Made by a program: the position numbers and the translations under genes
The notes under the pieces: model-generated
Told to the model about the DNA's origin: nothing
Seen by the model: only the letters and a program-made list of their open reading frames with translations
Database searches by the model: none
Shown here: positions 49,355 through 63,827 of the stretch, piece after piece
Numbering within the stretch: position 1 is the stretch's first letter
How the letters are laid out: every line of letters begins with the position of its first letter
Source of the DNA: Blepharisma stoltei ATCC 30299
Taxonomy: Eukaryota > Protista > Ciliophora
Direction of reading: 5' to 3'
Length of the DNA: 64,000 bases
Assembly (NCBI GenBank): GCA_965603825.1
Contig: CBFDEM010000051.1
Coordinates: forward strand, 620,001-684,000

Positions 49355-51302
49355 TTAAACTGTTGGATATGATGGTTGCATTTGGATACCACAGATACCA
49401 GCTCCTGCCTTGACTGCGATTCTGAGGTATCCTTGTTCTCCCCAAGTTGGGCCCCAAGAGTTCTTGACTTTCCAGTATTGAGGGGAGTTGCTAAAGTTGT
49501 AACCTACAATCAAAACACCATGGTCTAAAGCTGTTCCACAATCCTTGCTAACAATGCCTCCTTTATAGAGTTGCCAAGAAAATTGATTAGCTTCAACTAA
49601 GGGATCATGAAAAAAAGCCGCATAACTTTTTACAGCTGTTCTTTGAAACGTCAAAAAGGCTGAAAATTTATTGAATGCAACTATAGATTTTTTTAAAAAA
49701 TAATTGCATGCAAAAAAAGTGTATAGCAAATAGAAAAAAGCCATAGGGGTTTAAATATAAATAAAAATCAGAAAATAAAATACAATCTAGGGTTGTTATC
49801 TATTTACTAAAATATAATAATATATCTTTTATGCAAAATTATTATCTTTCTTAAGATGGTTTCTGAGTTAACCATTTCCACTATTCGCCAGGTGAAAAGG
49901 CTTTTTCAGTCTATCTTCCCCTTATCTTTACGAGCCGCTAAGGCGGTTGCTTCTCCTAGAGTCTCCGCTTATTCCGATTTGCCTCAATATATCTGGCTTG
50001 GGTGTCTGCTATGATATTCAAAAAAAAGAAATTTCTGTAGACTTTCGGCTCTTATGAAAAAATGCAACCCAGGATTTAATGTCAGTATCGCGCTAGGTAT
50101 ATTTCAAACAGAAAATAATATGATTAAAATATCCATCTAATGAAATCTCTCTAATAGCAGGATTGTACGCTCATAAGTGCCTAAGAGAATTAGGAAAAAG
50201 TATATGGAAAAGCTACTGTACTTTTTATATGGTTGTTCTAATATTTAAATTGCTGGTCTTGTATTTTATTTTCTGGTTTTTTTTTTTATTATTTATATCC
50301 CTATGGGCATTTTTTCTATCCACGTTTTACGTTAGTTTTGGCAGTGAGCCTAAGCCATACACTTTTTGCCAATGGTTTTTTAAAAAAATTTCTATTTGCA
50401 CTTTTTAGCTTAAAATAGATTCAGTCACTTCGAGGGTTAAAAGAACAGCTTTAAACACTATGCTGTGCATTTATTCATGATCACCCTTCAACTGCGACTG
50501 ATACTGGTTATTGAGCAACTGTTGCTTGTAATTGAGAAATGTTATCTGGTGCAACGTCGGTGTACTTGCTAATGGTAGCGCTGACTTGGGAAGCTTTGGC
50601 CTTGTTGCAAGTGGCTTGGACTGCCGTGTAAGCATAGTTTGCTTCTGAGGTGATGCCTTGAGCAATGATGTATTTGAAAGCATTGTCCATAAGCCCGCCA
50701 TTGCAACCTTGATTTCCATAACTAGATGAGCAATCAACAAGTTCTTGTTCAGAGAGGGATACAAGGGTGTGTCCAGCAAGGAACCAGGCACCTTCCACAG
50801 ATCCAGTTGTTGAGAAAGCCCAGCAGCTTCCACAGTTTCCTTGGTTCTTGACAGGGGTTACTGCACCTTTGGTGGTCCAGTCAACTTGGGATGGGACTGA
50901 AACTTCATCAAGCATGACGACGTTGGTTGCTTCTTTAGGTTGGAATTTGGTCGGGAGGTACTTAGCCTTGAATTCTGAGAAGCTCATGTCAGCGAATTGA
51001 TTTACACCCAGAGTCCAAGAATTTCCAAGGCTGTTGAAAATGCGGATATAAGCTAAGTTGTCACGGAATATTTTGAATCTCATTCCGTATTCTTCATCAG
51101 ATTCGTAGGATTTCTGGTATTCGTCCATATAATCTCTGAATTCTTGCTCCTCAAAGGCAAACTGAGCAAGAGCTGGAGAAGCTGAGGAGCTTGTTACTGC
51201 AATTGTAGCAACAACTCCGACAACAGCTAGAAGACCGAGGACAGCAAAGACGGTCTTTTTGGAGGTTTTGGCTTGAGTGCTGACAGCGAAATAGCCTTCC
51301 AT
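49355..51302 (-). pseudogene. Cathepsin L copy 1, disrupted by a TAA (50508) and an 890-bp TIR insertion
   Basis: 5' part has ERFNIN, GNFD and [11 protein letters not shown] motifs. CAA>TAA at a Gln codon; the catalytic His/Asn part (49355-49598) is separated by the insertion. Confidence 0.88.
49599..50488. mobile_element. Non-autonomous TIR DNA transposon (MITE-like), 890 bp
   Basis: Absent from cathepsin copies 2 and 4. Imperfect ~45-50-bp TIRs (AAGGGATCATGAAAA..GCATA..AGCTGTTCTTT vs AAAGAACAGCT..TATGC..TTCATGATCACCCTT). Flanking duplication CAACT, extendable to CTTCAACT (49591-49598 / 50486-50493). Confidence 0.82.
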
Positions 51303-52554
51303 TTTAATTTATTAAATTCACCTATTTTATGGAGTAAATCATGTGATTTGTTTCATTTTGAACAAAAATAAAAAAATTTATTTGCTGCCTTTTATTAGCA
51401 GGAGCTTTCTATATTTAAAAAGCCTAATGCATAAATTTAACTGAATTAAACTCAATCTTAAATTGATTAAATTTTTTTATTCAATATATTTTATTTTTAA
51501 AAAATTTTTGATACAGGATATTCGGTATTTTTAAATCAGCTTAAATAGGCCTTATACTAAATATAAAATCAGAAATATCAAAAATATTTTTGAATAAGAA
51601 ACTTAAGCAATAAACTTAAAGACTATATAATTTCAAAGATATTTTGAAAGGTATTATTGAAAGCAAATCTATAATTAAAATCGATTAAACTGACCCTAAT
51701 AGGTTAAATCGGCTTTTATAATAAAAGATGACTAAATATATGGCTGTTCTTCTACCCATTTTCAGCTTTAAAGTCTATATTTAACTCAAAATCTAAGAGA
51801 TTCCAGGCTAAGAATTAATATCTATAAAAGCTCTCCATCTCCAAATTTACATTACCATATGAGATTTTAATATTGAAGAATTATAATGCTATAAATAAAT
51901 ATAGAAACAAGAAATTAAATTTACAAAACTCCTATACAAAAATTAAAAGAGAAAGCACTTGCAAGAGAAGATCAATAACACCTATAAAAGATAAAGATAA
52001 AGAACAAAATAATCGGTAATCTCAATTGACTAAGCGAAAGAATAATTCTTGGTTTTTAGTTTAGCTTTATCTATCAGAAATAGTAATTTTAGATTTTTTT
52101 AAATAATGATTCTACATTAAGACATTGCACTGAGTATTAAATCCATGATAATGATGATGACACAATAAGCAGGATTTTTAAAGAAATAGTAGATTTGCAA
52201 GATAAGATAATTTTTTTGCTTTGTTTTCCAAATGGTGCGCATTTCTATCTATCAAGATGTGCCACACCAGTATGAGAACTTATGTATGAAAACTTATTGG
52301 GACTATAACTCCTACATTGCTTTTCAATATATGCTACTTATTCTCAAAATTACCCTCTTTACCAATTTAATGACCAATGTGTAAGAAATATATATACCAG
52401 TGCATTTTGGGAGTTAGAAGAAGAGTATATGAACTCTATCCAGCCTGCGGATAATGATGATAACTCTGCTGTTATAGCAGCAATTGGAGGCTTTCTATCT
52501 TTAATAGCATTTTAAGCTAAATTATACTGATTAAATCCAATAAGTTCGTTAAAT

Positions 52555-53607
52555 TTAAACTATTGGGTATGATGGTTCCATTTGGATACCACAGACACCA
52601 GCTCCTGCCTGTACTGCAATTCTGATGTAACCTTGTTCTCCCCAATTTGGACCCCAAGAATTCTTGACTTTCCAGTATGGAGGGGAATTGTTGAAGTTGT
52701 AACCTACAATCAAAACACCGTGGTCTAAAGCTGTTCCACAATTACTGCTAACAATGCCTCCTTTATAGAGTTGCCAAGCATCTTGATCAGCTTCAACTGC
52801 GACTGATATTGGTTGCTGAGCAACTGCTGCTTGTAATTGGGCAACGTTATTTGGGGTGACATTAGAGTATCCGCTAATGTTACAGCTGGATTGGCCAACT
52901 TTGAACCAGTTGCATTTGCCATCGCTTGCCGTGTAAGGATAGTTTGCTTCTGAGTTGATTCCATAATCAACTATGAATTTGAAAGCATTGTCCATAAGCC
53001 CGCCATTGCAACCTTGATTTCCGAATTGAGTAGAGCAATCGACAAGTTCTTGTTCGGAGAAGGATAGAAGGGTGTGTCCAGCAAGGAACCAGGCACCTTC
53101 TACAGATCCAGTTGTTGAGAAAGCCCAGCAGCTGCCACATTGTCCTTGGTTCTTGACAGGGGTTACTGCACCTTGTGTGGTCCAGTCAACTTGGGATGGG
53201 ACTGAAACTTCATCAAGCATGACGACGTTGGTTGCTTCTTTAGGTTGGATTTTGGTCGGGAGGTACTTAGCCTTGAATTCTGAGAAGCTCATGTCAGCAA
53301 ATTGATTGACACCCAAAGTCCAGGAATTTCCACGGGTGTTGAAAATGCGGATATAAGCTGAGTTGTCACGGAATATTTTGAATCTCATTCCGTATTCTTC
53401 CTCAGAGTCGTAAGATTTCTGGTACTTGTCCATGTAATCTCTGAATTCTTGCTCCTCAAAGGCAAACTGAGCAAGAGCTGGAGAAACTGAGGAGCTTGAT
53501 ACAGCAATTGTAGCAACAACTCCGACAATAGCTAGAAGACCGAGGACAGCAAAGACGGTCTTTTTGGAGGTTTTGGCTTGAGTGCCAACATCGAAATAGC
53601 CTTCCAT
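52555..53607 (-). CDS. Papain-family (C1A) cathepsin L-like protease, intact copy 2
   Basis: 350 aa; N-terminal hydrophobic anchor, I29 prodomain (ERFNIN, GVNQFAD), [25 protein letters not shown]. Confidence 0.96.
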   Translation of the reverse strand: MEGYFDVGTQAKTSKKTVFAVLGLLAIVGVVATIAVSSSSVSPALAQFAFEEQEFRDYMDKYQKSYDSEEEYGMRFKIFRDNSAYIRIFNTRGNSWTLGVNQFADMSFSEFKAKYLPTKIQPKEATNVVMLDEVSVPSQVDWTTQGAVTPVKNQGQCGSCWAFSTTGSVEGAWFLAGHTLLSFSEQELVDCSTQFGNQGCNGGLMDNAFKFIVDYGINSEANYPYTASDGKCNWFKVGQSSCNISGYSNVTPNNVAQLQAAVAQQPISVAVEADQDAWQLYKGGIVSSNCGTALDHGVLIVGYNFNNSPPYWKVKNSWGPNWGEQGYIRIAVQAGAGVCGIQMEPSYPIV

Positions 53608-54657
53608 TTTAATTTATTCGACTCATCTATTTTTGGAGAAAATCATGATATTGGTTTTGAACAAAAATTAAAAAATTTATTTGCTTCCTTTTATTAGCAG
53701 GAGCTTTCTATATTTAAAAAGATTAATGATAAATGTAAGTGAGTTAAGCTCATGCTTAAATTGATTAAATTTTTTTATTCAATATATTTTATTTTTAAAA
53801 AATTTTTGATACAGGATATTCGGTATTTTAAAGCAGCTTAAATATGCTTTATACTAAATATAAAATCAGAAATATCAAAAATATTTTTGCATAAGAAACT
53901 TAAGCAATAAACTTAAAGACTATATAACTTCAAAGATATTTTGAAAGGCATTATTGAAAGCAAATCTATAATTAAAATCGATTAAACTGACCCTAATAGG
54001 TTAAATCGGCTTTTATAATAAAAGATGACTAAATATATGGCTTTTCTTCTACCCATTTTTAGCTTTAAAGTTTAGATTTAACTCAAAATCTAAGAAATTC
54101 CAGGCTAAGAATTAATATCTATAAAAGCTCTCCATCTCCAAATTTACATTACCATATGAGATTTTAATATTGAAGAATTATAATGCTATAAATAAATATA
54201 GAAACAAGAGATTAAATTTGCAAACTCCTATACAAAAATTAAAAGAGAAAGTATTTCTAAGAGAAAATCAATAACACCTATAAAGATAAAAAACAAAATA
54301 ATCTGTGATCTCAATTGACTAAGCGAAAGAATAATTCTTGGTTTTTAGTTTAGCTTTTCTGCGCTTTTTGGCATCTTGCTTGAAAAGATGGTTGCTGACG
54401 TCACCATTTGCAGTTAAGATGGCGACCTTATGTTTATAATAGCTTGCTAAAAGAGGAAGCACTTTAAAATCTAAATAAGTTGAATTAAGCTTATTTTATT
54501 GCATCATCATTATAAAGGAATTAATACTCAGTACAATGTCTTAATTTAGAATCATTATTTAAAAAAATCTAAAATTTCTATTTCTGAGTCTTTACAGGCA
54601 GCATTTGGCCTCTCTCAAGCAAGACTTCATAGTGTGCTCTACTTAATCGAACCCTCC

Positions 54658-54678
54658 ATTATTATTATTATTATTATT
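54658..54678 (+). repeat. (ATT)7 microsatellite ending a unit-specific filler segment
   Basis: Direct reading; absent from the homologous spacers. Confidence 0.8.
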
Positions 54679-55064
54679 AAGCAGATTTTTAAAGAAATAG
54701 TAGATTTGCACGATAAGATAATTTTTTTGCTTTGTTTTCCAAATTGGTGGCATTTCAATCCATCAAATTTGCCACACCAGCATGAGAACTTATGTATGAA
54801 AACTTATTGGGACTATAACTCCTGCATTGCTTTTCAATATTATGCTACTTACTCTCAAATTAACCTCTTTACCAATTTAATGACCAATGTGTAAGAAATA
54901 TATATACCAGTGCATTTTGGGAGCTAGAAGAAGAGTATACGAACTCTATCCAGCCTGCGGATAATGATGATTACTCTGCTGTTATAGCAGCAATTGGAGG
55001 CTTTCTATCTTTAATAGCATTTTAAGCTAAATTATACTGATTAAATGGAATAAATTCGTTAAAT

Positions 55065-56985
55065 TTAAACTGTTGGGTATGATGGTTGCATTTGGATACC
55101 ACAGATACCAGATCCTGCCTTGACTGCGACTCTGATGTATCCTTGTTCTCCCCAATTTTGACCCCAAGAGTTCTTGACTTTCCAGTATTGAGGAGAGTTG
55201 TTAAAGTTATAACCTACAACCAAAACACCGTGGCTTAAAGCTGTTCCACAATCCTTGGTAACAATGCCTCCTTTATAGTATTGTTAAATATAGTTAGCTT
55301 CAACTAAGGGGTCAGGAAAAAAACAGCATAGTTTTTTACAGCTGCTCTTTGAACCGTGGAAAAGGCTGAAAATTTCTTTTTTTTTCACTAATAGATTTTT
55401 AAAAATAATGGCATGCAAAAAAGTGTATAGCAAAAGAAAGAAAGCCATAGGTATAAATAATCAAAAATAAAATAAAATGCAAGCTAGGGTTGTTAACGAC
55501 TTACTAAAATATAATAATATATCTTTAATGCAAAATTATTAGCTTTGCTTAAGATGATTGTTGAGTTGGCCATTTCTATATTCGCCAGATGAAAAAGTTT
55601 TTTAACTCGTGTTTTCCACTTATCTTTTTGAATCGTTAAGGCGGTTGTTTCTCCTAGAGTCTTCGCTTATTTAGATTTTCCGCGATATTTCTTGCTTGGG
55701 TGTCTGCTATGAAATTCAAAAAAATGAAATCTCTGTTAGACTTTTAGCTCTTATGGAAAAATGCGACCCTGGATAAAATATAAGTATCCCGCTAGGTATA
55801 TGTTCGATGATCTAGTAATAATATATCTAGAGTTATGAAAAGAACTGGGCATTAGCGAGAGCATATCATATTTTCTTATTTTATTTTTTCCCTCAAAAAC
55901 ATCATACAAAATAACTGAATAATATGTTGCAAGTGCTTGCTTTGAAATTGATATATTATTTAGAACCGGGAATAATATAACTAAAATATTTATCTTCTTA
56001 AATATCTCTAATAGCAGGATTGTATGCTCATAAGTGCCTAAGAGAATTAGGAAAAAATATATGGAAAAGCTGCTGCACTTTTTTATATGGTTGCTCCAAT
56101 ATTTTAATTACTGATTTTGCATTTTATTTTCTGTTTTCTTTATTTATTATTTATATCCCTATGGGCATTTTTTTTCTATCCACATTTTACCTTAGTTTTG
56201 GCAGTGAGCCTGGCTGTTGAGCAACTGCTGCTTGTAATTGAGAAACATTGTCTGATGCGACGTCGGTGTACTTGCTAATGGTAGCGCTGACTTGGGAAGC
56301 TTTTGCCTTGTTGCAAGTGGCTTGGACTGCTGTGTAAGCATAGTTTGCTTCTGAGGTGATTCCTTGAGCAATGATGTATTTGAAAGCATAGTCAACAATC
56401 CCACCATTACAACCTTGATTTCCATAACTAGATGAGCAATCAACAAGTTCTTGCTCGGAGAGAGATACAAGGGTGTGTCCAGCAAGGAACCAGGCACCTT
56501 CTACAGATCCAGTTGTTGAGAAAGCCCAACAGCTGCCACAGTTTCCTTGGTTCTTGATGGGGTTACTGCACCTTTGGTGGTCCAGTCAACTTGGGATGGG
56601 ACTGAAACTTCATCAAGCATGACGACGTTGGTTGGTTCTTTTACTTAGCCTTGAATTCTGAGAAGCTCATGTCAGCGAATTGATTTACACCCAGAGTCCA
56701 AGAATTTCCAAGGCTGTTGAAAATGCGGATATAAGCTAAGTTGTCACGGAATATTTTGAATCTCATTCCGTATTCTTCATCTGACTCGTAGGATTTCTGG
56801 TATTTGTCCATGTAATCTCTGAATTCTTGCTCCTCAAAGGCAAACTGAGCAAGAGCTGGAGAAACTGAGGAGCTTGATACTGCAATTGTAGCAATAACTT
56901 CGACAACAGCTAGAAGACCGAGGACAGCAAAGACGGTCTTTTTGGAGGTTTTGGCTTGAGTGCCAACAGCGAAATAGCCTTCCAT
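55065..56985 (-). pseudogene. Cathepsin L copy 3, pseudogene
   Basis: Deletion near 56640 creating a stop, 1-bp deletion near 56559, scrambled 55279-55293, and the same TIR insertion as copy 1. Confidence 0.9.
55306..56210. mobile_element. Second copy of the TIR element, same insertion site, right TIR deleted
   Basis: Begins cttcaact|AAGGGGTCAGGAAAA..GCATAG..AGCTGCTCTTT and aligns with 49599-50350. Carries an extra ~170 bp (~55800-55965). Joins cathepsin directly after gcagtgagcc. Confidence 0.85.
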
Positions 56986-57594
56986 TTTGATTTATTAAAT
57001 TCAACTATTTTATGGAGTAAATCATGCGATTTGTTTCATTTTGAACAAAAATAAAAAAATATATTTGCTGCCTTTTATAAACAGGAGCTTTCTATATTTA
57101 AAAAGCCTAATGCATAAATTTAACTGAATTAAACTCAGTCTTAAATTGATTAAATTTTTTATTCAATATATTTTATTTTTAGAAAATTGTTGATACAGGA
57201 TATTCGGTATTTTAAAGCAGCTTAAATAGGCTTTATACCAAATATAAAATCAGAAATATCAAAAGAATTTTTGCATAAGAAACTTACGCAATAAACTTAT
57301 AGATTATATAATTGCAAAGATATTTGAAAGGTATTATTGAAAGCAAATTTATAATTAAAATCGATCAAACAGTCCCTAATAGGTTAAATCGGTTTTTACA
57401 TAAAAAGATGACTAAATGTATACGATTCTTCTACTCATTTTAGCTTTAAAGTTCATATTAACTCAAAATTTAATATTTTAGCCAGAAATCCCAGGCTAAG
57501 AATATAAGCTATAACCCTATATCTAATTGGAGTCCAAAGTATTAACAAAATAAAGTACAACAAAAAGAAAAGATATTAGCACTGATCTCCAGTT

Positions 57595-58292
57595 AGGGAG
57601 TATTCTGCCATTTAGCATATCGGCAGAAGTTATAGCCGTTTTTTCCGTATAGAGTTTAACATCGGCTACTCTTGAATAAGTATCGATATAAGTTTGAGTA
57701 TATACTTTACCTATGCCTTTGAAAGAACCTACATAATAGACATCTTGTGCTCCAAGATAACCTGGATGCTCCGTTTCTATCTCTCCATAAGCTTCTTTTT
57801 CAGTCTAAAACTTTCAGCTTCCGTAAGAAGAATACCATCTTGCGCCATCTTCTCTAATGCTACTAAGCGTTTCTTTAGATTGCTTAGATCATTTCTAAGC
57901 CATATTGATCTAACACCTCCTTGTGACACTAATATCTCTTTGCGTTTCAATTCATTAGATACGCGAAGTTGACTGTATGCTGGATATTCTATCGCCATAT
58001 CAAGCACTGCTTTCTCTATAGTAGGATCAACTCTGTTAGCTATTATAGGTTTCTTACGACTAATCTCGTATAAAGCTTCTTCGCCACCTGTTTCATATAG
58101 TTCTTTAAATCTATAGTAACTATCCCTACTATATCCCATGGCTTTATATGCGGATGATATACTGCCAAGACTCTTTGCAAGCTCAAGTAATACTAGTTTT
58201 GGCTTGATTATTTTTAAATTCAAGTTCATTTTAATCTCCATTTAATAATTAATTTAATTTATCTAATGTAAGATTAAGTTTAAACAAATTCA
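57595..58292 (-). mobile_element. Bacterial IS481-family insertion sequence remnant (Rickettsiales ISRpe1-like), frameshifted and 3'-truncated transposase
   Basis: ATG 58229 with GGAG Shine-Dalgarno. KIIKPKL.LLELAK.LG..MGYSRD.YYRFKELYE.GG, GVRSIWLR; after a frameshift EIETEHPGYLGAQD.YYVG.FKGIG.VY.QT.IDTYSR..KLYT.KT.IT.AD.LN.RILP. Candidate left IR at 58267-58292. Confidence 0.9.
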
Positions 58293-58349
58293 AAATTGTA
58301 TCATAATTTATTTCTATCTAACATAAGATCGTTCTTGTTAAATCTATTG

Positions 58350-58751
58350 TTATAGATAATCTAAATTATACCACATCCCATCTTCTATAATGTTCATTAC
58401 TGATTCCACATATAATGACTTAAGCTCAGCTTGTATAGATGCTATTAATATTTGTGTCTCAGCTTCATTTTTAGGTTGTTCACAAAGTCGTCCACTTAAA
58501 AGATGTGCGAATAGTTCTATATCACTCAGCTCTTTAACCTCGTGTGATTTATGTACACGATTCAACCACTCAGCAAGTTTGTATGATATCTCAGGTAGTT
58601 CAGATATTTGTATTTCCACTGGACTAGCGTTAATTATATTTATAAGAAATTTTTTCGAGTGCATTATTTTATGTAAACGAGTTAGTTTTGGTAGGATTAT
58701 TACCTCATGGTAATCTGCAATAACTTGTTTGAGCGTATCCGATAGCTTCAT
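58350..58751 (-). CDS. Bacterial-type hypothetical protein (133 aa)
   Basis: Intact ORF preceded by AAAAGGAGAAAATT-ATG (Shine-Dalgarno); Trp encoded by TGG; lies between IS481 and nusA remnants. Confidence 0.7.
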   Translation of the reverse strand: MKLSDTLKQVIADYHEVIILPKLTRLHKIMHSKKFLINIINASPVEIQISELPEISYKLAEWLNRVHKSHEVKELSDIELFAHLLSGRLCEQPKNEAETQILIASIQAELKSLYVESVMNIIEDGMWYNLDYL

Positions 58752-58820
58752 AATTTTCTCCCTTTTTATTATTACTTTCTATCACCACAACTCATAAGAG
58801 AGCTGGATTGCAAAACCGGC

Positions 58821-58951
58821 TTCATCGCTTCTTCGTTTATGTTCTTCTGTTATCACATTGATATTCCAATAAGTTTAGAAGCTAAATGAGCATTCTGCCC
58901 TATCTTGCCAATAGCAAGACTTAAATTTTCCGGATATACAGCTCCTATAAC
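58821..58951 (-). pseudogene. nusA: Fragment of bacterial transcription factor NusA (KH2 domain), frameshifted
   Basis: Translates VYPENLSLAIGKIGQNAHLASKL, then after a frameshift WNINVITEEHKRRSDE. Matches the NusA motif LSLAIG..GQN.RLAS.L.GW.IDI.TEE. Confidence 0.75.
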
Positions 58952-61900
58952 TTATTAATGCAGACTAAAGTTTCAATGAAGCCAAAACTCATATCTTATT
59001 TTTTCATCAAATATTTTTAAATTAATTTTTGTAATAAAATCAATTTTTTCTCATAATTCTTCCTAAAGGTTTGCTAATTCTTTTAATTCAGATACATCAC
59101 TTATGAGTCATAGATATGGTGTGGTTCTTTCGTAATTTACTCCAATAATATCTCTTAAATGATTGATAAAATCTCTTCTTTCATTCTTGTATTTGATACA
59201 TATATTTATGCTGTGTTTCTCTGTTTCTTTCGTTTTACATAAATTACACATATCATTTTGATTAATATTTTGATTTTTCTTTGAGTGTCTTAGGGCTGTT
59301 AGAGTTTGTGCAGGTCCTGCTGCGTATCTTCATGCTGCTTTAATTCTCGCTTCACTTACCAAGTTTTTATTTAGATTTCAAAATTGCAGTTGACATTTAG
59401 AGTTAAGGTTAATCTCTCTTAAGAATTTGTACGTTTTTAGTGTAATCTTTTTATCAATTTCTTTTTCATGTATTTTTTGCCAGTATCTTTTAACTTTTAA
59501 TTTGACGTCTTTCTTTCAGTCTTTGTTAATTCAATTTACTTCACTGTCAGAGTACCGATATGGTAAATTTAATTCATACTTGCTCAATAAATTTGCATAT
59601 AAATCTTGAGTTGGTGTTATTCTGTCCTTTAAATTTTTAAGAAAATGTAATGAAATTTCAGAATATGAGTTCATTTCATATATCTTTTGTAGAAATATCA
59701 ATGATTTTTGATCAATATATTGTTCGACTGTAGGAATATTTAAATCAAGTAATATAGGCTCTATTGGTGTTTTGCTGTATACGTGGCAACATTCTCTAAT
59801 AATTTTATTGAACATTCTTTGGATAAAAATAATTGCAGTTTTACTTCTTTTTCTTGAGCAAATTTCCAATCCATATGTGCATCTCGGAAGAAATATTGCT
59901 TTATAGCAGTTAATTAATGTTGTAGTTGGGATATTTAGCATTTTTCTAATTGCTGGTATAAATGAACTACATGTACCTATTGCTTTATTTTTTAAATAAG
60001 CATATTGTGATTGATCTAAACCTGTTGATTTTAAATTTCCTTTAAAAACAATTCCTAAGTATTTATATTTATCAACTATTGGAATTTCAGTTCTTTTAAA
60101 ATGTAGTTTGGGTAATTTTTGGAGGGTATTTTTTCTGTTTCTATTAATAATTGTCATCAATGCCGTTTTTTCAGGTCCTATATTTAAATCCATACCATTT
60201 TTTTCTGTTCATTTTTTAAGATTATTAAGAATTGACTGTAGATCCTCACATTTTCCTGTAATAAAAGCTGTATCATCTGCATATTGAAAATTTATTTTTG
60301 AGTATAAATTCTCGTTTTTAATTAATTCTAGGCTAATATCTTTTGTTACATTTTCAATATCATCGATATAGATATTAAATAGTAATGGAGAAATCGCACT
60401 TCCTTGTCTAACCCCTTTAGTAATATCGATTTTAAATGTTTCATTTCCGTTGATTATTAAGGTAGTCTTTTCTCCTTTAATCATCTGGGAGATTGATTTT
60501 CAACTATCATCTGTGACTCTCTTACTTTTTATCTTTTCCATGAGTTTAGTTCTATCCACAGAATCATATGCTTTCGAAAAATCTATAAAAAGTATATATG
60601 AATCACTCTTTTTCCCTTTATTGTAATATTTTCGATATTCTAAGGTATTTTTCAGTAAGAAACTTTGTGTTATGCATGATTTTCCTTTTCTAAACCCATG
60701 TTGTCTATCTGAGATCTTAACGTTCTTTTCAATTTTTCTTAGTTCAGCCTTGTCAAGAATCTTCATAAAACTGTTCATTAATGTTATAGGTCTGTGATTC
60801 TTCAGTTCTTTATGATTTCCTTTACCTTTATATATAAGAATAGTCTTAGCTTCATTTGCAACATCCGGTATACCATAAATTCTGCAAGTATTTAAAAAAT
60901 GTGTTATTGCTTCTACCATTATATCTCCTCCTTTTTTTATTATTTCATTCGTTATATTATCTGGTCCAGGAGCTTTTCTGTTAGGCAAAGATTTAATAAT
61001 ATTCTCAATCTTTTTTGAGTTTCAAAGTTCATCTTCTAGACAACCTGCTTGTGGAATAAAAGATATCGTACTCCTAAATTGATCTTCAAATTCTTTTGTT
61101 CAAGATTGAATCTCAAATGCATTCATTGGTAAGACCAGTTTTTTTTTATTCAATAATCTTTTTATTTTGTTTCAAGCTCCATAGGGATCATTTATGCATT
61201 GTTTTAATCTATTTTCACTTATTATTTCATATCTATCTAGTCTTTTTAACTGATCAATGCATATTTTCTTTACTTTCCGTATTCTTTCAATAAATTCATT
61301 ATTTTTCTGAGAATAGCAAAATTTGATTCATTCTTTGAGTTTGCTATTTCTTTTCCTTAAAATTTTCATTTCTGGAGTTTTAAAATGATCAGGCTGTAAT
61401 TTAGTTTTTAGAATAATTGATTCTTCATCTAAGATAGTCTTTATTTCGGTATAGATTTGAGAAGGGTTATTTGTTATGAAAATACCTTTTTCTTTGAATT
61501 TAAGAAAGAGTCTACTTTTAAAGCCTTCATGTTCATCTCCTTCTAGTTTATATCATGGAATAATTGTTTTTTGAGTTCTTAATGATATAATTATCGAAAT
61601 GCGTGATAGGAGTAAAATATGGTTAGTATTTAATTGAGGGACTTCTATATAAATAATTTCTGATGTTGAGTTTGAGAGAATGTAATCAATAATTGTGTGT
61701 GTATTATGACCTCTAAAAGTTGATATTTGCATATCATTGAGAATGTATAGATGAGAATCTTTTATAAATTTAGAAAATATCTCTCCTGTTAGATCATCGA
61801 TTTCAGATAAATATCCTTTTAGATGTGCATTAAAATCACCCAATAGTACTATTTGACGTCTATCCTTTTGATTCTTTTGAATAATTTCTTGAACTTCTAT

Positions 61901-62206
61901 GATAAAGTCAATATAGTCATCAATTGATTTCTTACTTTGGTGATTTGCTACTACTGGGGCATAAGCTACTATTATTAAGTAATCTTCAATTAATGTTGCT
62001 GTTATTCTATGATTGTTAGTTTCAATTGATGTTATTAGATTTGCAAATGTTTCATGTATTAGTAACCCAGTTCCGCCTGATCCTCTGTTGCCAGCAATTG
62101 GCCCATTATTTCCAATTCAGATAAATCCTTGAATATATAAGGAAGTTTTCAGTCATGTTTCAGCAATTCCAAGAATAGAAATATCATTAGTAATCATTAA
62201 ATTAGT
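58952..62206 (-). mobile_element. Non-LTR retrotransposon (LINE; APE endonuclease + reverse transcriptase + CCHC), 5'-truncated
   Basis: With TGA=Trp there is one open frame 62197-59063 (~1044 aa). EN motifs AETW, GGTGLLI, YAP, LGDFNAH, IDYIL; RT motifs KAPGPD, RPITL, QHGFR, FIDFSKAYDSV, GVRQG..SPLLFN.Y, YADD, YKYLG; C-terminal CNLC..ETEKH..C. The frame continues past TAG 59063 to TAA TAA at 58952-58957. Confidence 0.93.
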
Positions 62207-62768
62207 ACACCTATAGAAGATAAAGATAAAAATCAAAATAATCTGTGATCTCGATTATCTAAGCGAAAAAATAATTCTTGACACTTTGTAAGTTCATTTA
62301 GTTCAGCTTTATCTATCAGCAATAGTGATTTTAGATGTTTTGCTAAATGATAATCTTACATTAAGACATTGTGCTGACTATTAATTCATAAAATAATAAT
62401 GATAATGATGATGCTAATAAGCAGATTTTTAAAGAAACAGCAGAATTTGCATTAAAACAAAAATTTATGCTTTGGCTTTTCAAATTGGTACGCACTTCAA
62501 TAGATTAAGATTTTCCACACCAGTATGAGAACTGGAAACTTACTGGGACTAAGCTACTTCAATATACCCTCTTTACCAATTAAAAGACCAATGTGTAAGA
62601 AGTATATATACAAGTGCATTTTGGGAGCTAGAAGAAGAGTATATGAACTCTATCCAGCCTGCGGATAATGATGATAACTCTGCTGTTATAGCAGCAATTG
62701 GAGGCATTCTATCTTTAATAGCATTTTAAGCTAAATTATACTGATTAAATGGAATAAATTCGTTAAAT

Positions 62769-63827
62769 TTAAACTGTTGGATATGATGGTTGCATTTGGA
62801 TACCACAGATACCAGCTCCTGCCTTGACTGCGATTCTGATGTATCCTTGTTCTCCCCAATCTGCACCCCAAGAGTTTTTGACTTTCCAGTATTGAGGGGA
62901 GTTGGTAAAGTTGTAACCTACAACCAAAACACCGTGGTCTAAAGCTGTTCCACAATCCTTGCTAACAATACCTCCTTTATAGAGCTGCCAAGAATCTTGA
63001 TTAGCTTCAACTGCGACTGATATTGGCTGTTGAGCAACTGCTGCTTGTAATTGGGCAACGTTGTCTGGGGCGACATCGGTGTACTTGCTAATGGTAGCGT
63101 TGACTTGGGCAACTTTGATCTTGTTGCAGGCTCCTTGGACTTGTTGATAAGGATAGTTTGCTTCTGAGGTGATTCCTTGAGCAATGATGTATTTGAAAGC
63201 ATTGTCCATAAGTCCACCTTTGCAACCTTGATTTCCATAAATGGAGTTAGATGAGCAATCAACAAGTTCTTGTTCGGAGAGGGATACAAGGGTGTGTCCA
63301 GAGAGGAACCAGGCACCTTCTACAGATCCAGTTGTGGAGAAAGCCCAGCAGCTTCCACAGTTTCCTTGGTTCTTGACAGCGGTAACTGCACCTTTGGTGG
63401 TCCAGTCAACTTGGGATGGGACTGAAACTTCATCAAGCATGGCGACGTTGGTTGCTTCTTTAGGTTGGAATTTGGTTGGGAGGTATTTAGCCTTGAATTC
63501 TGAGAAGCTCATGTCAGCGTATTGATTGACACCAAGAGTCCAGGAATTTCCAAGGGTGTTGAAAATGCGGATGTAAGCTGAGTTGTCACGGAATATTTTG
63601 AATCTCATTCCATATTCTTCATCAGACTCGTAGGATTTCTGGTATTTGTCCATGTAATCTCTGAATTCTTGCTCCTCAAAGGCAAACTGAGCAAGAGCTG
63701 GAGAAACTGAGGAGCTTGATACTGCAATTGTAGCAACAACTCCGACAACAGCTAGAAGACCGAGGACAGCAAAGACAGTCTTTTTGGAGGTTTTGGCTTG
63801 AGTGCCAACAGCGAAATAGCCTTCCAT
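62769..63827 (-). CDS. Papain-family (C1A) cathepsin L-like protease, intact copy 4
   Basis: 352 aa with all catalytic motifs ([21 protein letters not shown]). Confidence 0.96.
   Translation of the reverse strand: MEGYFAVGTQAKTSKKTVFAVLGLLAVVGVVATIAVSSSSVSPALAQFAFEEQEFRDYMDKYQKSYESDEEYGMRFKIFRDNSAYIRIFNTLGNSWTLGVNQYADMSFSEFKAKYLPTKFQPKEATNVAMLDEVSVPSQVDWTTKGAVTAVKNQGNCGSCWAFSTTGSVEGAWFLSGHTLVSLSEQELVDCSSNSIYGNQGCKGGLMDNAFKYIIAQGITSEANYPYQQVQGACNKIKVAQVNATISKYTDVAPDNVAQLQAAVAQQPISVAVEANQDSWQLYKGGIVSKDCGTALDHGVLVVGYNFTNSPQYWKVKNSWGADWGEQGYIRIAVKAGAGICGIQMQPSYPTV

Follow-up and report, generated by a model that had tools for sequence, protein, structure and literature searches.

The question raised by this locus is whether a stretch of bacterial-looking DNA within a ciliate gene array is a genuine part of the host chromosome and, if so, which bacterium supplied it and whether it arrived together with the retrotransposon lying beside it. 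In the 64,000-nt window analysed (Blepharisma stoltei ATCC 30299, contig CBFDEM010000051.1, positions 620,001–684,000 of the forward strand), the space between two cathepsin L genes is occupied by bacterial DNA at 57504–58994 and by a host non-LTR retrotransposon (LINE) at 58995–62206. We regard it as quite probable that these represent two separate insertions at almost one spot, an old capture of symbiont DNA and a recent LINE.

Both flanking genes belong to the papain-family cathepsins (Peptidase_C1 and I29 domains). On the left lies the 5′ part of cathepsin L copy 3 (56211–56985, minus strand; 89.6% identity to the copy 4 CDS by blastn, I29 propeptide domain E = 8e-19), which sits ~520 bp downstream of the insert’s left edge. 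On the right, copy 4 (62769–63827, minus strand) is intact and encodes 352 aa (Peptidase_C1 E = 2e-74, with I29). Alignment of paralogous spacers placed the insert within the cathepsin array at the breakpoints initially annotated: host spacer at 57199–57503, homologous to the spacers at 51640 and 53937, loses homology at ...GGCTAAGAAT (57503), and homology is regained at ACACCTATA (62207), from where host spacer continues to 62768. No direct repeat was found in the sequence around the 4.7-kb insert, in line with the earlier claim that target-site duplication was lacking. The further claim that ~160 bp of spacer had been replaced stood in part: the counterpart of spacer 51816–51977 is absent from the assembled form, but 47 bp of it are present in a LINE-less form recovered in read contigs. 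The first 52 bp of the insert (57504–57555) are filler lying outside the transposase homology; they match nothing else in the genome and do not match the paralogous spacer significantly. Over 58949–58994 the bacterial part has a fuzzy right edge: these 46 bp may be diverged host spacer or junction filler and show a weak collinear similarity to spacer 51889–51935, not significant on its own.

The bacterial part comprises three pieces, all on the minus strand. At 57556–58292 lies an ISRpe1-type IS481 element reduced to its left end and transposase codons 1–235 of 366, with the 3′ side cut off. The suspected transposase remnant was recognised by NF033577 at model positions 2–112 (E = 8e-21) and 119–179 (E = 5e-13), with scores that truncation of the gene keeps under the full-length cut-off. 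In tblastn against a Tisiphia copy, aa 1–144 aligned at 84% and aa 155–235 at 73%, with one frameshift near 57800 (residue ~150) and an end to homology at residue 235. The left end of the element, set by comparing Tisiphia copies, lies 51 nt before the ATG; the right end is missing. This copy is a relic and not an active element, and does not carry a full DDE catalytic core with both terminal inverted repeats. Its transposase N-terminus is 81–84% identical at the amino acid level to Ca. Tisiphia and Rickettsia endosymbiont copies, which bears out the Rickettsia-like origin first proposed. Among the matches listed from 72,556 plasmids, the annotated ISRpe1 transposase of Rickettsia peacockii (80.9%) was among those at or above 80% identity, three records fell into the 80–90% band, and the next best outside Rickettsia were Cardinium (69%) and Piscirickettsia (61%). 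Nucleotide identity of the relic to Rickettsia and Tisiphia copies was 75–77%; taken with the related relic on contig 15 (below), values to reference copies were 73–79%, and from values of 75–79% against reference copies the window element would represent a lineage outside those references.

The second piece (58791–58948) is an internal fragment of nusA from the KH2 region, spanning approximately codons 315–369 of 502. Its identification as a KH fragment was upheld by TIGR01953 (positions 306–331, E = 9e-6) and by tblastn to residues 317–369 of Tisiphia NusA, in two frames. With ~55 codons it covers a small part of the N-terminal, S1 and KH1-KH2 architecture of the full protein, and a 4-bp deletion after 58868 breaks its frame. 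Of the six genomes compared, Tisiphia provided the closest NusA, sharing the wording WNINV.TEE..KRR. A contig from run X9 (guessed to be RNA) covering 58385–58920 holds a slightly different, less decayed version with an additional GCCG after 58868 which, judged by reading the sequence, brings the frame back; this variant hints at another source.

Between these two broken genes lies an intact 133-aa ORF (58350–58751 in the ORF list), preceded at ~7 nt from its ATG by a Shine-Dalgarno-like GGAG, just as had been described. It is predicted to encode a small all-helical protein (AlphaFold pLDDT 81), and the predicted model found no fold match in the PDB. Two weak relatives were detected among 1.8 billion representatives; the family, searched for within the Rickettsiales, is tiny and includes ORFs in two genomes of that order (hhalign probability 96%). 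Three synonymous and six nonsynonymous changes separate the strains (dN/dS ~0.5).

The remainder of the insert, read on the minus strand from 62206 to 58995, forms one frame with 16 in-frame TGA codons, two TGG codons and, close to its end, one TAG. With TGA taken as Trp, as initially read, this ORF contains Pfam domains Exo_endo_phos_2 (E = 6e-8) and RVT_1 (E = 1e-12 and 1e-10), the combination of AP endonuclease and reverse transcriptase that characterises RTE-like LINEs, and the N-terminal portion of the endonuclease seems to be lacking where the copies share their 5′ end. Sister copies on contigs 11 and 45 are 99.2–99.5% identical to this one. Across eight copies the 5′ ends fall within 8 nt, while the 3′ ends are spread over 2.6 kb, so that the target-primed signature of duplication, common 3′ end and variable 5′ truncation is not displayed; the family includes 3′-truncated copies without poly(A), some of them abutting telomeres. 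Direct contact of this LINE with bacterial DNA, without poly(A), had been claimed; a long poly(A) is indeed absent, but the element terminates with a short A6TA at 58995, and nusA homology starts beyond a further 46 bp. It is probably the published family rnd-1_family-276, described in the genome paper as a 3.2-kb LINE with AP endonuclease and RVT_1 domains, having three copies >3 kb that are >98% identical on different contigs, and loci that are partly excised or are missing from a fraction of the population (PMC9942856).

An assembly chimera, in which the assembler had mistakenly linked ciliate DNA to reads from a bacterium sequenced alongside it, would be suggested by the occurrence of bacteria in ciliate cultures, by the bacterial gene signals of the segment and by the silence of the genome paper’s main text and one supplement about it (PMC9942856). 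We nevertheless find it scarcely credible in view of the read evidence, taken from Logan contigs rather than raw reads. In runs X1 and X4, which come from two independent studies, a 492-nt contig (57199–57690) spans the left junction and shows 0 differences. The same junction is bridged by a contig (57336–57557) of run X8, which carries the same species label, is ~3% diverged and also contains the bacterial pieces. Depth over the bacterial part equalled that of the flanks (109 vs 92–113 in X1; 187 vs 224–243 in X4), the genes are broken, as dead DNA should be, and neither another NusA match nor a further copy of the segment was found in the 41-Mb assembly, making it single-copy. Contigs over one of the junctions singled out at the outset (57400–57700) and the comparison of depth proposed there agree that the bacterial sequence is physically joined to host DNA at host depth, and the junction shared by X8 would imply germline inheritance. 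A different fate met the proposal that bacterial DNA and LINE entered together, through template switching, 3′ transduction or joint capture at a single break. The two lie side by side in the assembly, no target-site duplication surrounds the whole 4.7 kb, and the LINE lacks a long poly(A) tail; yet joint entry has become very improbable. A 1771-nt contig from X4 passes from 57696–58994 through 47 nt of spacer-like DNA directly into 62207–62632, with 21 of the 47 nt equal to spacer 51939–51959, so that an allele empty of the LINE retains ancestral spacer at this point. X8 possesses the bacterial DNA and left junction with a LINE-family depth of only 0–19 vs ~165. The ages are discordant as well: the LINE is young, as its near-identity to its sisters indicates, whereas the bacterial DNA is old, differing by ~3% between strains and, in its IS, by ~15% from a relic on contig 15. 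The search for other LINE copies with the same bacterial 3′ tail returned none in the genome, and the 46 bp separating the two parts are neither LINE nor nusA. No contig bridging the LINE junctions was present among those listed. The other observations argue for two insertions, the bacterial one being the older.

As to the donor, the assignment to a Rickettsiaceae-type bacterium is strong for the IS and suggestive for the other pieces, since IS elements are mobile among bacteria, little of nusA is present and the search for the ORF family covered Rickettsiales. The best named matches were to Ca. Tisiphia and Rickettsia. An alternative donor into which an ISRpe1-type element had moved, such as a prey bacterium or another intracellular lineage, would accord with the horizontal spread of such elements (relatives occur in Cardinium and Piscirickettsia, and one match is located on a contig binned as Chitinophagaceae), with the 58–73% identity of the nusA fragment to any Rickettsiales NusA, and with our finding no link between Rickettsiaceae symbionts and Blepharisma in the literature searched. 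It is unlikely all the same: all three bacterial pieces agree in direction, contig 15 carries another relic from that IS lineage (84.5% identical to the window copy) next to a TraB/GumN-like fragment, and the Rickettsiaceae genus Ca. Megaira has been recorded in the heterotrich Stentor roeselii (PMC10132079). The order nusA, ORF and IS was absent from the reference genomes examined, and the mosaic could therefore have arisen either in the donor or at integration. Whether the intact ORF, alone or with its surroundings, has become an expressed functional host gene is a separate matter, and we judge it quite unlikely. In favour of domestication are its integrity between two broken neighbours, the confident structure model and a third study whose runs, taken by guess to be RNA, have contigs over 58385–58920 and none over the IS or left flank. 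However, given that the neighbouring pieces carry ~2 disruptions in 856 bp, the probability that 402 bp would escape disruption by chance is estimated at ~0.4, and the dN/dS value, based on nine changes, is not distinguishable from neutrality. The supposed RNA contig is a variant fitting neither DNA strain, at a depth of ~10 compared with ~500 for the cathepsin gene, and neither TGA-as-Trp codons nor an intron nor host-type signals were observed.

The history that we consider most consistent with two separate insertions would begin in an ancestral germline from which the sampled B. stoltei strains descend. A double-strand break in the cathepsin L spacer may have been repaired by end joining that captured ~1.45 kb of Rickettsiaceae DNA from a bacterium, presumably an intracellular symbiont, whose genome contained ISRpe1-type IS481 elements. 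Some 75–115 bp of spacer would have been lost, without target duplication and with short filler at the edges, and the captured mosaic would have comprised the internal nusA piece, the small ORF of the Rickettsiales family and 60% of the IS, counted from its start. The segment is decaying, with frameshifting and truncation of the IS and the 4-bp deletion in nusA, and since development does not eliminate it, the bacterial DNA passes into the somatic nucleus. More recently, in the ATCC 30299 lineage, a copy of the young LINE family would have landed 0–45 bp from the bacterial DNA, replacing 47 bp without target duplication, with reverse transcription probably primed on a broken DNA end and not by endonuclease nicking; it is present in some molecules only. 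Two independent insertions within 45 bp are an unlikely coincidence, left unexplained unless a fragile site is assumed. Rather unlikely, in our estimate, is a broader version in which this spacer is a recurrently broken capture site that took up symbiont DNA first and LINE cDNA primed on a broken end later, and in which the less decayed version from the RNA-seq study, its nusA frame intact, derives from a living relative of the donor in Blepharisma cultures. If that reading were true, a break-primed, endonuclease-independent route would account for the fixed 5′ end, the scattered 3′ ends and the telomere-capped copies of the LINE family.

The insert provides physical evidence that a Rickettsia-family bacterium was probably once close enough to Blepharisma to leave DNA in its germline. 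Together with the relic on contig 15, it suggests that this ciliate's compact somatic genome tolerates raw symbiont DNA, which bears on the quality of developmental DNA elimination as a genome defence. The locus also constitutes a dated natural marker with three states (no LINE, LINE and deletion form), which could be used to follow a young retroelement in a ciliate, both as it inserts and as it is partly removed. A new transfer mechanism is not demonstrated by the locus, and the LINE family itself is already published.

Compared with that published family, the element shares the 3.2-kb length, the domains and the partial absence from molecules, and differs in having a bacterial neighbour that the main text and one supplement do not describe (PMC9942856). 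The IS resembles ISRpe1-type elements of Rickettsia and Ca. Tisiphia in its transposase N-terminus and in a 51-nt leader of the same length, but only the first 737 of ~1190 bp are present, frameshifted and with an incomplete catalytic core, and unlike the bacterial copies it resides in a eukaryotic chromosome. Endonuclease-independent insertion of LINE-1 at DNA breaks and dysfunctional telomeres was reportedly described by Morrish and colleagues in 2002 and 2007; the likeness here consists of missing duplication, a 47-bp target deletion, 3′-truncated poly(A)-less copies and copies abutting telomeres, although in the present case the route is suggested by anatomy, and the 3′ truncations could reflect developmental DNA elimination. 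Transfers from Wolbachia to arthropods or nematodes place endosymbiont DNA in the host nucleus, and NUMTs and NUPTs are captured by end joining at double-strand breaks. The bacterial insert shares with them the character of a non-functional intergenic fragment without duplication, with a small target deletion, junction filler and later decay, and differs in its Rickettsia/Tisiphia-type donor, in its short (~1.45 kb) and mosaic nature, and in its host, a ciliate with separate germline and somatic nuclei in which the fragment survives developmental DNA elimination.

The assembly holding the window spans 41.46 Mb in 64 contigs with CCCTAACA telomere repeats at contig termini, and for Blepharisma stoltei ATCC 30299 a macronuclear genome of 64 telomere-to-telomere contigs has been published (PMC9942806). 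The insert (57504–62206) is situated among tandemly arrayed cathepsin genes of the papain family, represented for instance by a 352-aa ORF at 62769–63827 with Peptidase_C1 (E = 2e-74) and I29 propeptide domains. The array is a unit repeated twice, each unit having one interrupted and one intact copy. Copies 1 and 3 (49355–56985) carry a ~0.9-kb stretch within the coding region, between CDS positions ~804–823, the two stretches being 81–91% alike, and copies 2 and 4 are uninterrupted; this alternation identifies the array as a duplicated two-gene unit. The break in the spacer described in the initial annotation was borne out by alignment: homology to two paralogous spacers ended at 57503 and restarted at 62207, and ~160 bp of the paralogous spacer (51816–51977) had no counterpart at the insert site. 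Inspection of the sequence likewise agreed that no direct repeat flanks the insert. No tRNA or Rfam family was found in 57300–59200. Elsewhere in the window, a 5-kb block (26000–31000) had 45–52% G+C, compared to 27–41% in the remainder.

The bacterial part of the insert (57504–58994) contains three features, all on the minus strand. The IS481 relic (58292–57556; NF033577, E = 8e-21 and 5e-13) aligned to a 366-aa Tisiphia transposase at residues 1–144 (84% identity) and 155–235 (73%), with a frameshift separating the two blocks, and its left end was 51 nt ahead of the ATG, the same spacing as in Tisiphia copies. The best 80 genome matches to the transposase were Ca. Tisiphia and Rickettsia endosymbiont copies (81–84%) with one exception, a 3-kb contig binned as Chitinophagaceae. 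As an independent control, the transposase was compared with 72,556 plasmids; among the matches listed, the one at 80% or more was Rickettsia peacockii ISRpe1 (80.9%), followed by Cardinium (69%) and Piscirickettsia (61%). A second relic of the same lineage was located on contig 15 (434739–438015), 5′-truncated and internally deleted with its 3′ half retained. The two relics were 84.5% identical to each other (15.5% apart), while each was only 73–79% identical to reference copies. Neighbouring the contig 15 relic was a TraB/PrgY/GumN-like fragment (E = 1.6e-4). A 204-aa ORF in the same place is intact, and searches of Pfam and of 151 Rickettsiales-order genomes gave no match to it.

The nusA fragment (58948–58791) corresponds, in two frames, to residues 317–369 of the 502-aa Ca. 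Tisiphia NusA and also matches TIGR01953 positions 306–331. Its WNINV.TEE..KRR wording was best shared with Tisiphia among six Rickettsiales-order genomes compared. As a taxonomic marker the fragment did not discriminate, since 282 of 301 genomes of this order matched a 32-aa piece at 56–73% identity. Between the nusA fragment and the IS relic lies an intact 133-aa ORF (ORF133, 58751–58350) with GGAG ~7 nt ahead of its ATG. No Pfam or NCBIfam family matched it, a word-index search returned the self-match only, two metagenome scans found nothing, and its exact sequence had no match in public assemblies. An exhaustive search of 1.8 billion representatives yielded two weak relatives (E = 2e-4), both on short contigs lacking informative neighbours, and a profile built from ORF133 and these relatives matched ORFs in two genomes of Tisiphia's order with 96% probability. 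The AlphaFold model was all-helical (pLDDT 81) and had no Foldseek match in the PDB below E = 1. Synteny did not point to a donor: NusA was on a different contig in both genomes with an ORF133 homologue, and the nusA–ORF133–IS order was found in no reference genome searched.

Sequences of the stretch were found in 12 runs from three studies under a single organism label, and four of these runs were placed on 57000–62700; all read evidence was in the form of Logan contigs. The left junction was spanned without differences by a 492-nt contig (57199–57690) in both X1 and X4, coded runs from different studies. Depth over the bacterial part was found to equal that of its flanks (X1, 109 versus 92–113; X4, 187 versus 224–243). 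A third run, X8, contained a contig over 57336–57557 plus more bacterial pieces, and differed by 14 substitutions and 5 gap positions in 490 nt. X8 shares one study with the reference, and since both the German ATCC 30299 and a Japanese strain, HT-IV, were sequenced there (PMC9942806), X8, run names being coded, is probably HT-IV. An assembly chimera or contamination would have to account for a junction contig identical in two studies and crossed also by the diverged run, for flank-level depth, and for an assembly in which no other NusA match exists and only the IS relic is copied elsewhere, on contig 15; on these grounds it is excluded for practical purposes. The placement of bacterial DNA in the host chromosome, proposed in the initial annotation, is thus upheld. 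The insertion would already have been present before the two strains diverged, which suggests that it was inherited through the germline. X8 also skips 54 bp (57558–57611), starting exactly at the end of the transposase homology (57556/57557), which suggests further indel turnover at the insert's left edge.

The remainder of the insert is a LINE read on the minus strand from 62206 to 58995. Its single frame, with 16 TGA and 2 TGG codons, one TAG near the end, and Exo_endo_phos_2 and RVT_1 domains, identifies it as a LINE in the host code. Sister copies were found on contig 11 (99.5%) and contig 45 (99.2%), along with shorter ones, as was a second group of eight copies, 72% identical, in which ~186 bp of the endonuclease region is absent. 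The window LINE and the 72% group fit two published families: rnd-1_family-276, with a 3270-bp consensus and 'three >3 kb sequences ... >98% identity', and rnd-1_family-273, whose endonuclease domain contains a central IES (PMC9942856). Eight LINE copies were compared, namely that in the window (58995–62206), L005 (contig 11:662–3868), L006, L007, L008 (contig 51:865002–866783), L009, L019 and L020. Their 5′ ends fell within 8 nt of each other (window-equivalent 62196–62203; TAAGA precedes three of them), and the endonuclease N-terminus appears to be absent at this common end. The 3′ ends were spread over 2.6 kb, the opposite of usual LINE truncation. The right-end copy of contig 51 abuts the terminal telomere repeats, which extend for 1.5 kb or more, with its 5′ end, and the contig 11 copy abuts the left telomere with its 3′ end. 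This pattern is consistent with free DNA ends having served as primers for reverse transcription, and developmental trimming of germline copies could also produce it.

The initial annotation had further proposed that the LINE and the bacterial DNA were captured jointly, and this part did not hold. A single 1771-nt contig in X4 runs from 57696 to 58994, continues through 47 other letters and resumes at 62207–62632. The first 30 of these letters form a loose end in X1, and 21 of the 47 are identical to the paralogous spacer at 51939–51959 (0 matches expected by chance), so that the LINE-less form keeps ancestral spacer, of which the LINE replaced 47 bp. X8 was nearly empty for the LINE family (depth 0–19 versus ~165) even though it carries the bacterial DNA. 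The ages are discordant as well, with the LINE <1% diverged from its sisters and the bacterial DNA ~3% diverged between strains. ATCC 30299 is reported to be virtually homozygous (PMC9942806), and the presence of both forms in such a strain indicates a recent insertion not shared by all molecules or cells. Taken together, this points to the LINE as a separate, recent insertion absent from some molecules or cells, in accord with the published remark that such loci are sometimes partly excised or missing in part of the population (PMC9942856).

The bacterial DNA has decayed: the IS is truncated and frameshifted, and what is left of nusA amounts to 55 internal codons, disrupted by a 4-bp deletion. 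Given the disruption rate of its neighbours, ORF133 would have a chance of ~0.4 of being intact under neutrality, and the nine strain differences listed in it (3 synonymous, 6 nonsynonymous) give a dN/dS of ~0.5; the segment is accordingly best read, from its sequence, as a neutral relic. Two further forms of the locus were seen. A contig in X1 links 58840 to 62218 through AGAT, omitting the nusA fragment and the LINE; on one side of the joint it has just 30 letters. It may be an imprecise deletion product. In X9, a run of the third study guessed to be RNA, a 540-nt contig over 58385–58920 is ~98% identical to the window and window-like at X8-variant sites. It has two C>T changes (58844 and 58847) and GCCG added after 58868, an addition that would restore the nusA frame. 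Neither of the DNA strains sampled agrees with this contig, which may come from a living relative of the donor, from a copy confined to the germline or from a different allele.

The literature searched showed no link between Blepharisma and Rickettsiaceae symbionts, and neither the main text nor the one supplement consulted of each B. stoltei genome paper (PMC9942806, PMC9942856) mentions this locus, Rickettsia or IS481. The heterotrich Stentor roeselii has yielded Ca. Megaira (PMC10132079). Comparison of the fillers at the edges of the bacterial part (57504–57555 and 58949–58994) with the paralogous spacer gave no significant match, and the left one had no further copy in the genome. The lack of target duplication, a target loss of ~75–115 bp, short unassigned filler on either side and a mosaic make-up from fragments unrelated to one another form an end-joining capture anatomy, from which the bacterial DNA would have been captured by end joining at a double-strand break. 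The LINE insertion, with no duplication and a 47-bp loss, would share this anatomy, and the two independent insertions lie at most 45 bp apart. The locus is a real, old Rickettsiaceae-type insertion in a ciliate chromosome, and the adjoining LINE is a separate, recent element of an already published kind. The bacterial insertion is an event of a kind already known; organelle and Wolbachia DNA in nuclei displays the same end-joining capture anatomy.
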